From: Dimorphilus gyrociliatus
Lineage: Eukaryota > Animalia > Annelida
Direction: 5' to 3'
Assembly: GCA_904063045.1 (NCBI GenBank)
Contig: CAJFCJ010000003.1
Coordinates: 2,590,504-2,654,503, forward strand
DNA length: 64,000 nt
The notes beneath the pieces were generated by a model. That model worked only from the letters and a program-made list of their open reading frames with translations. It had not been told where the DNA came from and made no database searches. Positions within the stretch are counted from its first letter, which is position 1; the number at the start of each line of letters is the position of its first letter. This document shows positions 32,378-48,530 of this stretch, in pieces. The position numbers and the translations under genes were made by a program.

Positions 32378-35300
32378 TCAGATATCACACGATTTGTCAC
32401 CGTTTTCTTCAGTCACATCAGATTCGTTGTCCCGTTTGTCTTCCGTTTCCGGTTCTATCTCATCATGTCCGTTTTCCAATGAACTTTGCTTGTCATTTTC
32501 TTCAGTTATTTCTTCTCTATCCTATTTAAAAATAAAGAAGGGGATAGTATTACTTGAAGGGAGAATTTTCTTTTTCTGTATCATTCATTTCTAAAGAATT
32601 TCTGATTTTCTAATCCTTAAATTATATTGTGCTAATTTAGTTAACTATCATAGCCATTGTTCGTAGTATAAAAAACTTCTATCTTTGGCTTGTTTACACC
32701 CAAATTGCGATACATAAAGCTCAAACTGAAAGCAACTTCAAAACGATCAACTTTAATTAAGAATAGACTTTTTCTTGACCATTAATTAATTATTCATTAA
32801 TATTTGATTGTAATTCATTTTCGATTTAATGTTCTAATAGCATTGGGAGTTTAAAAGTAAAAGATTATTTCTTTCTAAAGAGAACAACTAATCATATAAG
32901 CTATTTCATTGTTTTTACGGCTGCTTTTCAATTTTTCTTCCTTCTATAGATTGTATAGGAGAGCATACAACTCTAAAGTACAATCAATTGGACGTGAATA
33001 AAAATAAAAGTTTATATTGAACCGTATGTGGGGAAGATGTCTAAAATCTATGCTTTTTTTTTTATTATTTTCTTGTCCTTTATTATACTTTTCTAGCACT
33101 TACGTTACTGTCGTTATTCGAGTTGACAATGCAGTAGATATTAGTGTCGTGTTCCGCCTGCGCGTGTTGTAGTAGATTCCAGCAGGAGTGAAAAATTGCG
33201 TTGCAGTTGACGCACGCTAAGCATTTCGGTTCGTCTGTAAATAAACAACAAATTGTGCATTTTTTTCTTTGTGGATCTAGATAAAAAAGAAAAGGGTTTT
33301 CTATTTTCTCTTCTTTTGTTTTTATCAATTTAAAATATTTTTGTGGATAAGAGTTTACGAAAGTAATTGGTAAAAACTGCATAAATCAGATTTTTTTTTA
33401 GCATAGTGTGAAGGATAGAGAGAGAATGAAGGAATAGATAGATAGATGAATTGATAGCATATAGAAAAGGGATGGAGTAACAAGATAGTAAGATGGACAG
33501 ATAGAGACACAGAGGACGAGCATAAGAATAGAAAAATATACAATATTTCATAGAGAAATCTCTCTTTGTGTCACATAACCAATTAGTAAAGATCTTTATT
33601 ATCCTCAAATATTTGTGCAGTTACCTCATACAGTTTATTATAATTAGGATTAAAGAGAAAACGAGAAAACGAGAGAGAGAGAGAGTGGCTCTTAAAAGTA
33701 GGATAAGTAAAGGAATAGGCAAAAAATAAATTAATGAAGATTGGAATCTAGAATAAGAAACTTATATAAAAAAAAACACTCAAAGCACTTTGTTACGAAT
33801 TGAATATAAACATTTTATTAGTATAATACACGATAGTGAATAATACTAGATTGACTTGGATAATCTTATACTTTATTAAGCAATTGATGCCGTGCTGTCT
33901 TGTGGATGTAATTTCATTTATCTCTAATTTAGTTATCTACTAAACATGTACGTTTATTAAACCTCTTCCTCCCTTTTCACTCACAAACCCCCTTCCTCCC
34001 TCTCCCCTTCCCCTCTCCATATAATGTTTCTCCCTTCCCTCTCCTGTAGATCTATATATATATATATTTAAATATTTATAAATATATATGTTAGTATAGA
34101 GTATATATATGCCATATACTTCCTTAACAACATACTGTCTATTCAAATAGATAGAATGAACTCTCTTGTATTTATAACAGAATGGATTTCTATATTTTCT
34201 TTCTCTTGCCACTTATTTCTATGGCAGTGTGTTAAACGGTTGCAGCAAATGATTATGAATACAATAAACTCAGTTTGCTCGTCTTATACAGTATATAGGT
34301 CAAGGTAATTTAACATGGATGTAATAAATTCAAAAAATTGCTTTGGAAGGCTTTGCAATTTTTTAAGTTCTATTCAACACAAAATTGAATAGCTAGATAT
34401 TAAAAGAAAATGCATAACGTTGTCTAAGAAGAGAGATAGAAATATACTATAAATTTTATTTCAAGGGCAAAATAAACTTACCAGTTTCATCAGCAAACCT
34501 CAATCGGCATGGTACCTTTTTATGCTCTGTCAAACTTTCTACATCAACGAATAATTGTCTGCAGTTTCCGCAGATCAGTATATCGGATAGGACGGGAGGA
34601 GAAGGTAGACGTGGAGATAAAGATGATTCTATTCAAAAGGAATAAATTTCATGTATTTTTTTTCATGTTTTTATTTCTATTAAAAATAAGAAACCAAAAC
34701 AGGGGGGAAAATACAAATGACAGAGCAGCAGCGAAAAAAATTAAACTTTTAGGATTTTTCTAAAAAAAAAACAACTGCAAAATATTTCACATCTTTAACT
34801 ATTCAAACAATAGGAAAAAATCATAAATAAAAAAATTAAACTTAAAATTTGCCTCTTATATAAAATATATAAAGCATCCTAAAAGAAAAAGCACTAAAGC
34901 CCATCAAAATCTTAGGCCTACTCTACAAGTGTTTGTTTCTCCGACAACGGCGCCGGGAAGTGGTTGCTGATTGTTCTGATTAGCTTTAACTTCTCGAGTG
35001 TATACACTATGTCCAAGCTGGGTCTTCGCTTTCTTTCTTTTCATTTGGACTGGTTCTTTAATATCCGGTATTAGATAGTCTATTGCTCCGTGAAATGATA
35101 GCTATTCATTGATAATATTCAGTAATCTTCCTCATTTTATTTTGTTTTCTATTGAAATGAGATAAGAAGATAAGGAAACGAGTCTAATGGATAAAAGAAT
35201 TTTTCATAAATTTTTTCCAATAAATAAGAAATCAAAAGCAGTCTTTCTCTAGAATTTAACCTTTCTATTGAAAAAGTACCAAGGAGTAAATAAAGAAAAG

Positions 35301-47300: not shown

Positions 47301-48530
47301 TAAAAAGGAATAAATAACGTGCACAGAAAAATTAAAATACGAAACTTACCCAGAGGCTGTCCAGCGTAAATTCTCTGATCTTCTCCTGCGACTGAATTCC
47401 TTGCATCGAACTCGTTAGCGTATTGTACAAAAGCGTATCCCTTGTGCATTGAAATCCCCTGAATTTTTCCATATCTTTATTGTTCCGAAATTCATTATTG
47501 GGAGAGAAAAAAAAACACAAAATAATAAAAAAGGGATAAGAGATTTACAAGCAATAAAAAAAGAAAACAATCTTATTAAAAAGTTTTATCCCCTTTCTTC
47601 TCATTTTCCCCTTCCGTCTATTAATTTATATCTTCATATTACCCCTGCTGAGTTTTGTATTTCATGCAAAATCTTAAACGTGTTACTAATCAGCCTATGT
47701 TAGAAAGGTTAAGTGATAGAATTGCTGAATACTTTATGATTCTTGTACTTTATTGAGATTTCTCTACCGTATTGCTTATCGTAGGAAAACAGAAAATATA
47801 TTGTAAATTCAAACTTGTATACGCGTATATGAAATATGTATTGATAGTAATTGCTACACTATCGCTACGACATTGTCAATAGGAATTTGATATGTATCCA
47901 ATAGTACGCTTATGCAGAGTAATAGATTATATATAGAAAATATTTATATTACCCCTAACTTGTTATAACCCACCTCCTCAATTTTTTCAAAAAAAAAAAA
48001 GAAAGAAAGAAAGAAGAAAGAATGAAAGAATGAAAGAAATAGCTGAATAGTTTTTCATATCATTCGACAATTATTGGAAAAACTATGAAAAATTTTCGTC
48101 CTATAAAATACATATTTTAGGCAATTGAACGCCACCACCTGATAGCATTTTACTACTTATATAACGTAAATATTTAATAATAATTGTATCCTTTTCTTCT
48201 CTTTTTTTTTTACCTTCTTTTCGTTGAAAGATATCGATATAATTAGACATTTTTTTTTTTTGATTGCATATGATAAATAGTATTTAGAAAAAAATGGCTT
48301 TTTCCTTTCTTCTCTTCACCCCTTTTTATACATATTTATATAAATAGAGTAAGTAAAGAGATAATTATAGAAAAGAAAAATAATAGATAAAACGTTGAGT
48401 ATACAAACCTCTTGAAAACGTTTTCAACATCGTCCTTAGTTAATGTAAAGGTATTGAGATTGCCTACGAAGACCCTTGAGCCGATAGAGGCGGGGTCACT
48501 TGCGTTAGTAATATTACTAATTTTCGGCAT
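32378..48530 (-). CDS. hnRNP C/RALY-like RRM protein fused to BCL11A-type CCHC and C2H2 zinc fingers, with an acidic tail (~323 aa, 8 coding exons)
   Basis: Exons 48530-48409, 47474-47350, 44134-44068, 43995-43978, 40552-40335, 34628-34482, 33234-33104 and 32521-32378. All are GT-AG and phase-compatible, totalling 972 nt. RRM: [10 protein letters not shown]...[10 protein letters not shown]...DVNMAAEPK. Fingers: [12 protein letters not shown]...EHKKVPC and [22 protein letters not shown]. Confidence 0.82.
35614..35664. repeat. (AG)n microsatellite with a poly-G interruption
   Basis: AG run, then a G run of about 10, then further AG units. Confidence 0.9.
45176..45249. repeat. Compound (AG)n/AAAG microsatellite
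   Basis: About 74 nt of nearly pure purine dinucleotide repeat. Confidence 0.9.
46033..46060. repeat. (AG)n microsatellite
   Basis: About 14 AG units. Confidence 0.9.

Follow-up and report, generated by a model that had tools for sequence, protein, structure and literature searches.

The 64,000-nucleotide window from the annelid Dimorphilus gyrociliatus carries, on its minus strand from position 48530 to 32378, a gene that is very probably this animal's hnRNP C/RALY orthologue in the architecture standard for non-vertebrates, with two zinc fingers that would serve as a protein-contact module. The gene is an ordinary orthologue and belongs to a known, under-annotated family: because the finger-bearing form is widespread and apparently ancestral in bilaterians, its presence in this genome is unexceptional. 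Its value lies in the pattern across animals, namely a non-vertebrate hnRNP C/RALY orthologue with two conserved fingers that automatic annotation has mostly missed. In the literature, we found no account of fingers in invertebrate hnRNP C/RALY proteins, nor of CG42458 together with C2H2.

Gene structure and transcript evidence

Eight exons were re-derived from the sequence, with introns that are all GT..AG and compatible in phase, and their summed length of 972 nt corresponds to 323 codons plus TGA. This agrees with an earlier note on this DNA, which had proposed a single 323-residue reading frame spliced from eight exons, and all motifs quoted in that note were found in the exon translations where it had placed them. 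Exon 1 (48409..48530, minus strand, as for all exons below) provides the start codon and the first half of the RRM with RNP2 RVFVGNL, and exon 2 (47350..47474) provides the second half with RNP1 KGYAFVQY. Exon 3 (44068..44134) encodes DVNMAAEPK, which closes the RRM region, and then a basic stretch. Exon 4 (43978..43995) is an 18-nt micro-exon that yields WDCFFDA when the flanking split codons are included; its skipping would leave the reading frame intact. Exon 5 (40335..40552) encodes a proline-rich linker with the NLS-like PPVKRTR and with VKRSLVAL, and is followed by a long intron of 5.7 kb. Exon 6 (34482..34628) encodes the CCHC zinc finger (DILICGNC, 12 residues, H, 4 residues, C) and then RLRF, exon 7 (33104..33234) the C2H2 finger (C-x2-C, then a ten-residue stretch, x4 and H, with IY after it), and exon 8 (32378..32521) the acidic C-terminal tail with the TGA stop. 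Searching the whole window against Rfam gave no match.

Expression evidence comes from a 1148-nt spliced contig of runs X5 and X6, which represent one sample whose source is a close relative with a genome other than that of the window. Here, 34628 is joined to 40335, the junction that the earlier note had singled out for checking, and the contig runs through all of exon 5 and on into exon 4 and the end of exon 3. At this loose end, exon 4 is present in 18 of 18 nucleotides and is joined to the last 12 nt of exon 3, 11 of which match. The contig directly shows the joins from exon 3 through exons 4 and 5 to exon 6; the exon 1–2, 2–3, 6–7, and 7–8 junctions are based on homology and on the 1148-nt size of the contig. 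Exon 5 is covered in full, with eight differences listed, all of them synonymous. The reading frame is under purifying selection, with nine of nine differences between contig and window synonymous over exons 5 and 6 together. In coral metatranscriptome runs X1 and X3, only low-complexity pieces of 21–25 nt matched the window, so their word share of 0.06–0.07 says nothing about expression or habitat.

Family proteins aligned to the window by tblastn are collinear with exons 1, 2, 3, 6, and 7 (E values from 1e-14 to 5e-4), with E values down to 1e-13 for exon 1 and from 1e-5 to 1.5e-4 for exon 7. The locus is a real spliced gene, and chance is excluded as the source of the exon match. The contig spliced from exon 3 to exon 6 and the collinear family proteins bear out the earlier claim of one gene that holds both the RRM and the fingers. 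An RRM gene and a separate finger gene, joined only by a chance compatibility of phase, would fit the length of the intron between exons 5 and 6 and the existence of copepod proteins that have the same fingers but no RRM. Against this, the exon 3–4–5–6 joins lie in one spliced contig and the same collinear order recurs within single proteins of many phyla, transcriptome-derived ones included, and we regard the two-gene explanation as extremely improbable.

RRM identity and distribution of the finger form

The window protein has a single N-terminal RRM of hnRNP C type, in line with the assignment made earlier, and its strong PDB matches are restricted to hnRNP C and RALY. Exon 1 matched RALY and hnRNP C only (E 9e-10 to 9e-7), and exon 2 matched the same two proteins at E 3e-12 to 3e-11, with the next best match at 1e-3. 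In Pfam, exon 2 matched RRM_1 at E 4e-4, and the scan by exon gave a weak RRM_1 match of 20.6 bits.

Judged against the family alignment and vertebrate RALY/RALYL, the protein also has the DxNxxxEPK motif, the aromatic/acidic patch, PxKRxR, and the acidic tail. The exon 3 motif DVNMAAEPK is conserved (family consensus LDVNxVSEPK), WDCFFDA from exon 4 corresponds to DWDYYYD of arthropod orthologues, and PPVKRTR from exon 5 fits the family consensus PPxKRxR, a motif that vertebrate RALY and RALYL carry too. The acidic tail comes after the fingers in family members and after the zipper in vertebrate RALYL.

The order RRM, KR motif, CCHC, C2H2, and acidic tail was found in hundreds of database proteins, with sources among insects (including Drosophila), crustaceans, chelicerates, priapulids, molluscs, flatworms, hemichordates, and amphioxus. 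The arrangement of RRM, then CCHC, then C2H2 recurs in about 25 representative clusters, and the CCHC motif occurs in 116 of the 116 further matches listed to an insect member. These proteins are named at source as "heterogeneous nuclear ribonucleoprotein C", "hnRNP C-like 3", "RNA-binding protein Raly-like", or "uncharacterized", and nearly all family matches bear the RRM label alone in their Pfam annotation.

The orthologues of hemichordates and amphioxus carry the finger pair; none of the vertebrate RALY/RALYL entries checked has it, and two that were read (P0340 and P0327) show the zipper at that place. Because the finger form spans protostomes, hemichordates, and amphioxus and vertebrate RALY/RALYL have the zipper, sequence comparison indicates that bilaterians ancestrally had the fingers and that the vertebrate coiled coil is derived. 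This inverts the direction assumed in the earlier note, where the finger module had replaced the zipper. The same note had suggested an old, uncharacterised protostome family; the family is indeed old and uncharacterised, and it extends beyond protostomes, since hemichordates and amphioxus have the finger form.

The two fingers and their likely role

For exon 6, a search of 1.84 billion proteins returned 145 relatives at E ≤ 1e-3. In the window protein, the RRM is followed on its C-terminal side by a CCHC finger of the form D-x-[LIV][LIV]-C-G-x-C-x12-H-x4-C and then by a C2H2 finger that has the conserved Trp. Invariant columns of the family alignment are D, C, G, C, H, K, and C, then C, C, H, and H, and the exon 7 finger is kept across the family with its Trp almost invariant. 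Pfam gave a weak zf-C2H2_4 match for exon 7, and the scan by exon a match of 26.1 bits to the ZNF451 sixth-finger model, slightly below its cut-off. A CxC directly after RLRF, present in at least 90% of the family alignment, is absent from the window protein (RLRFADET) and from protein P0018; its absence marks a variant, and the window gene stays in the family.

AlphaFold modelled a family finger region as two separate beta-beta-alpha fingers (pLDDT 82–94) with a disordered linker between them and no helix of coiled-coil length. Several searches returned generic fingers: exons 6 and 7 of the window searched singly against the PDB gave only generic C2H2 matches at E above 0.01, the ESM Atlas searched with a family finger region only generic C2H2 clusters, and Foldseek of the AlphaFold model against the PDB only generic zinc fingers, none at E ≤ 1e-3. 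The two-finger family profile was unspecific against the PDB, with multi-finger arrays (PRDM9, CTCF) dominating.

From its N-terminus, the protein runs through an hnRNP C-type RRM, a short aromatic/acidic micro-exon, and a PPxKRxR NLS-like motif to a CCHC finger and a C2H2 finger, each standing alone, and ends in an acidic tail. We propose that the RRM would bind uridine tracts in nuclear pre-mRNA, like vertebrate hnRNP C, and that the fingers would act as a protein-contact module, for self-association or for recruiting partners, where vertebrates later evolved the tetramerising basic-zipper/coiled-coil. A protein-contact role is suggested because the fingers are single and widely spaced, because Trp and hydrophobic residues occupy the usual base-contact positions of the second finger, and because they are most similar to protein-binding CCHC fingers (BCL11A ZF0, FOG/U-shaped).

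The fingers might instead bind nucleic acid. In vertebrate hnRNP C, the basic region ahead of the zipper gives a second, high-affinity RNA contact, and the fingers could have that role in its place: the CCHC finger is flanked by basic residues (HKK..CRLRF), and the model has generic C2H2 fingers that bind DNA and RNA as its structural neighbours, as the two-finger profile has them as its sequence neighbours. However, the fingers are isolated along a variable, disordered linker, in contrast to tandem arrays that read nucleic acid. The second finger also speaks against this role through its almost invariant Trp and the hydrophobic residues at its base-contact positions, and so does the first finger, whose best specific match in the PDB is a protein-binding finger; we consider the role possible, if unlikely.

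A more specific protein-contact role had been put forward with the earlier description of the fingers as "BCL11A-type". When the family CCHC profile was searched against the 177,635 sequences of the PDB, the BCL11A ZF0 peptides 9bv0 and 9b4p ranked first and second with a weak match (E 0.004, 20 bits), and FOG/U-shaped scored E 0.065. The Cys-Cys-His-Cys ligand set of ZF0 is present in the window finger, and the window and family CCHC fingers share with ZF0 a D-[IL]-L-[IT]-C-G-x-C strand, a missing aromatic residue before the first Cys, and EHK[KR]xxC. As in the N-terminus of BCL11A/BCL11B, an isolated CCHC finger is followed by a distant isolated C2H2 finger; the module is placed C-terminal to the RRM in the window protein and N-terminal to the DNA-binding finger arrays in BCL11A/B.

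Of three hallmarks of BCL11A ZF0 given in PMC12006351, two are a spacing of 14 residues from the second Cys to the His (also bioRxiv 10.1101/2024.12.10.627839) and five hydrophobic residues at the helix start that form the tetramer core. In contrast, this spacing is 12 residues in the window finger and in the whole family, the 2-residue insertion being placed in BCL11A by the HMMER alignment. The helix start before the His reads V-E-S-L-T-E in the window (family consensus x-x-L-x-x-L-x-E) and is polar, with no hydrophobic patch of ZF0 type. Against the Pfam model of the BCL-11A CCHC finger (PF25491), the window finger scored 13.7 bits over profile positions 1–11 only, against a cut-off of 27, and below-threshold matches were found in five of 25 family members. 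The description as BCL11A-type is partly supported: the top PDB ranks of the ZF0 peptides speak for it, and the spacing, the missing hydrophobic core, and the Pfam score against it. The S-C-W-N-L-L patch of the second finger, hydrophobic and with Trp at the helix start, is presumably compatible with BCL11 ZF1, for which we know of no solved structure.

None of the 145 relatives was BCL11-like by length and finger position (about 35 read, 30 source-named). A region-restricted homologue search for BCL11 with the amphioxus fingers, a poorly suited query, returned eight candidates, all from amphioxus. Copepod proteins with KKFRP...YIPKPIP ahead of the fingers were considered as a possible arthropod BCL11; this was rejected because, at their full length of 432 aa, they lack additional finger arrays and have a linker similar to the hnRNP C-like one.

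Were the fingers a module of BCL11 ZF0/ZF1 type, they would mediate zipper-like tetramerisation or form hetero-oligomers with BCL11 transcription factors. The top-ranking ZF0 peptides, the shared strand and EHK[KR]xxC, and the below-threshold PF25491 matches would agree with this, as would the finding that ZF0 and ZF1 mediate BCL11A self-association (PMC12006351). The 12-residue spacing, the polar helix start, the low PF25491 score of the window finger, and the lack of any BCL11-like protein among the relatives argue against it, and such a module seems highly unlikely. We also regard as distinctly doubtful the idea that the CCHC–C2H2 pair is an ancestral bilaterian hnRNP C self-association module that shares ancestry with BCL11 ZF0–ZF1 and was swapped for the coiled coil in vertebrates. 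If it were true, oligomers of hnRNP C (the "RNA length ruler") would have been built twice, from unrelated domains, and co-assembly of invertebrate hnRNP C with BCL11 would be conceivable.

Comparison with named hnRNP C/RALY proteins

The window protein shares with invertebrate hnRNP C/RALY-like proteins the whole order of parts: hnRNP C-type RRM, DVNxxxEPK, aromatic/acidic patch, PPxKRxR, CCHC finger, C2H2 finger with Trp, and acidic tail. Examples are the RefSeq hnRNP C of Tribolium castaneum, hnRNP C-like 3 of aphid and Penaeus, RALY of Branchiostoma lanceolatum, and 697-aa Drosophila orthologues; PMC5570092 gives CG42458 as the orthologue of hnRNP C in Drosophila. Unlike most invertebrate members, it has no CxC after RLRF. 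The linker between its fingers is short, as in P0018, a transcriptome protein, and the KRSLVAL motif of its exon 5 linker occurs otherwise, among the sequences compared, in mollusc members and in clusters P0101, P0130, and P0142.

Compared with vertebrate hnRNP C1/C2, RALY, and RALYL, the RRM is 55–60% identical over the matched exons. The post-RRM aromatic/acidic patch, PxKRPR, and an acidic C-terminus are common to the window protein and vertebrate RALY/RALYL. When the post-RRM halves of vertebrate proteins were used in tblastn to look for a zipper-like exon in the window, the best match outside the RRM exons had an E value of 0.7, consistent with the earlier claim that a leucine zipper is missing and that fingers stand at its place. 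The vertebrate hnRNP C coiled coil forms tetramers (PMC9943658) and is taken for granted in work on the vertebrate tetramer. Where vertebrate hnRNP C/RALY proteins have a basic region and this leucine-zipper-like coiled coil, the window protein has its two zinc fingers.

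Gene structure, splicing and selection

Re-derivation of the exon boundaries from the sequence places the hnRNP C/RALY-like gene on the minus strand in eight exons, namely E1 (48530–48409), E2 (47474–47350), E3 (44134–44068), the 18-nt micro-exon E4 (43995–43978), E5 (40552–40335), E6 (34628–34482), E7 (33234–33104), and E8 (32521–32378). All introns have GT–AG borders, pyrimidine-rich stretches precede the acceptors, and the exon phases are compatible, with a summed length of 972 nt (323 codons plus TGA); omission of E4 would leave the reading frame intact. The single 323-aa ORF proposed in the earlier note is thus reproduced, and the motifs quoted there were all found in place. 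Individual exons or database orthologues served as the queries throughout. E1 and E2 each gave strong PDB matches to hnRNP C and RALY RRMs only (E 3e-12 to 9e-7), the next-best PDB family for E2 being nine orders of magnitude weaker. E6 encodes a CCHC finger (C-x2-C-x12-H-x4-C), E7 a C2H2 finger (C-x2-C-x12-H-x4-H), and E8 an acidic tail.

The 40335/34628 junction, set beforehand as decisive for one gene, is present in a spliced contig of 1148 nt, 95–99% similar to the window, from X5 and X6, two runs of one sample of a close relative. There, 34628 abuts 40335, and the 5706 nt skipped are bounded by CT..AC on the plus strand, i.e. GT..AG on the gene strand. The contig includes the whole of E5 and extends 144 nt past 40552; the first 30 of these letters, reverse-complemented, give the full E4 (18/18) and then the end of E3 (11/12), so that E3, E4, E5, and E6 lie in one spliced molecule. 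By arithmetic only, the length left over would accommodate part of E2 on one side and, on the other, E6 to E8 with a 3' UTR. Within E5 and E6, all differences between contig and window are synonymous (9/9), which shows purifying selection on exactly this frame, including the low-complexity linker exon E5. The locus holds a gene that is spliced and under selection, and its product combines an hnRNP C-type RRM with two conserved fingers.

Two coral metatranscriptome runs, X1 and X3 (word share 0.06–0.07), were rejected as support and attributed to a simple-repeat artefact because they match only in 21–25-nt pieces on low-complexity intron sequence (34555–40554). Elsewhere in the window, two adjoining long ORFs on the minus strand (219 and 151 aa; 54665–55849) include a KADDDTFV stretch, which may be glycosyltransferase-like, of the beta-1,3-galactosyltransferase type.

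Distribution and annotation of the finger-bearing family

With E6 as the sole query, an exhaustive HMMER search of 1.84 billion representative proteins returned 145 matches at E ≤ 1e-3. On re-scanning these with every exon of the window, about 25 clusters were seen to combine an E1-/E2-like RRM and an E6-like CCHC finger in the same order, all but two with an E7-like C2H2 finger; the rest are mostly two-finger-only fragments. By source name or organism, members come from insects, including aphids ("heterogeneous nuclear ribonucleoprotein C-like 3"), Tribolium and other beetles ("heterogeneous nuclear ribonucleoprotein C"), locusts ("RNA-binding protein Raly-like"), bees, ants, mosquitoes, and Drosophila species (697 aa); from crustaceans (shrimps, crabs, barnacles, and copepods); from chelicerates and allied groups (spiders, scorpions, and one pycnogonid); and from Priapulus, bivalves, gastropods, one cephalopod, and the flatworm Macrostomum. 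The CCHC motif also occurs in 116 of 116 further listed matches to an insect member. Given this breadth, the earlier suspicion of an old, unannotated protostome family was correct as to age and annotation, but the family is wider: both fingers follow the RRM in the hemichordates Glandiceps (taxonomy checked) and Saccoglossus and in three Branchiostoma species and one Branchiostoma hybrid, one protein being named "RALY".

Since public databases already contain many members of the family, filed as hnRNP C or RALY, the gene belongs to a known kind. Precomputed Pfam labels give PF00076 (RRM_1) alone for nearly all orthologues, leaving the fingers largely invisible; with both fingers below curated cut-offs, the RRM-CCHC-C2H2 architecture is systematically under-annotated. 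Drosophila CG42458 is treated simply as an hnRNP C orthologue (PMC5570092), and our literature search found no paper discussing the invertebrate hnRNP C/RALY fingers.

Several variants were observed. In amphioxus the finger-bearing gene is present as two diverged paralogues (P0311/P0463 and P0317/P0320/P0321), and older Saccoglossus "Raly-like" isoforms end ahead of the fingers. Four complete copepod proteins of 432 aa (P0425, P0121, P0120, and P0145; Oithona nana and marine metatranscriptomes) lack the RRM, share the CCHC-CxC-C2H2 module and LKTYSNP lead-in with the family, and have an N-terminus (MLVKSYY) similar to the segment that directly follows the RRM in the insect members; they may represent either a paralogue without the RRM or an alternative-promoter isoform. 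A third group (P0457, P0451, and P0118), found in Logan assemblies only, joins a basic N-terminus (KRRKRRR) to the same DILICGNC...H-x4-C finger; next come LRVFCEC and a C2H2 finger containing LLQHVQ. Among the proteins fetched, the E5 linker VKRSLVAL matches KRTLVTL of mollusc members and three unnamed clusters, and a second E5 stretch of 10 residues is likewise mollusc-like, a hint at lophotrochozoan rather than arthropod origin for the window; against this, the micro-exon's WDCFFD resembles arthropod DWDYYYD.

Fingers and the vertebrate zipper

In agreement with the earlier note, tblastn with the post-RRM halves of vertebrate RALY and RALYL found no zipper-like exon in the 64 kb. The search that returned the hemichordate and amphioxus proteins also gave 88 CCHC-less matches, mostly vertebrate RALY and RALYL; both vertebrate entries read (P0340 and P0327) carry a LKSDELQTIKKELTQIK-type zipper at the finger-equivalent place. 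DVNxxxEPK, an aromatic/acidic patch, and PxKRxR are common to the family, amphioxus, and vertebrates, a sequence likeness that supports their orthology. By parsimony, the bilaterian ancestor had the fingers, and the coiled coil dates from the vertebrate (or olfactorean) stem. The earlier wording, fingers in place of the zipper, holds as anatomy, but the history it implies is reversed.

Finger function and relation to BCL11A

AlphaFold, run on the family finger alignment, predicts two independent beta-beta-alpha fingers (pLDDT 82–94) with a disordered linker between them (pTM 0.37); the model confirms foldable fingers and no coiled coil, and is silent on partners. Foldseek with this model returned generic zinc fingers only. 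By analogy with the vertebrate family, PPVKRTR would direct nuclear localisation and the RRM would bind U-rich pre-mRNA, and finger type and position suggest that the fingers would contact proteins. Such a protein-contact module, for self-association or recruitment, is a tentative reading; RNA binding by the fingers appears unlikely.

The E7 helix start (S-C-W-N-L-L; S-A-W-D-L-M in the family) is a hydrophobic patch, which may resemble that described for BCL11 ZF1. For E6, the CCHC profile (alignment A3) placed the BCL11A ZF0 peptides 9bv0 and 9b4p in the top two positions of 177,635 PDB sequences (E 0.004, 20 bits, spanning the whole finger), ahead of a FOG-type U-shaped finger (E 0.065). Both the family CCHC and ZF0 have D-[IL]-L-x-C-G-x-C and EHK[KR]xxC and lack the aromatic that normally precedes the first Cys. 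E6 appears to be a protein-binding-type CCHC finger with BCL11A ZF0 as its nearest solved relative, which partly supports the "BCL11A-type" label. By contrast, the Pfam BCL-11A CCHC model scores 13.7 bits on the window against a cut-off of 27; across the family it touches 5 of 25 members, each with a subthreshold score. No BCL11-like protein was seen among the 145 E6 matches, an assessment that used the length and finger position of every match, a reading of about 35 sequences, and source names for 30.

Tetramerisation in the manner of ZF0, or hetero-oligomerisation with BCL11, would draw on this resemblance but is highly improbable. ZF0 has three peculiarities: CCHC ligands, a spacing of 14 residues instead of 12, and a helix start with five hydrophobic residues that form the tetramer core (PMC12006351). 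Unlike in ZF0, the spacing is 12 residues and the helix start is polar, both in the window's finger and throughout the family; judged by ZF0's defining features, E6 is not a ZF0.
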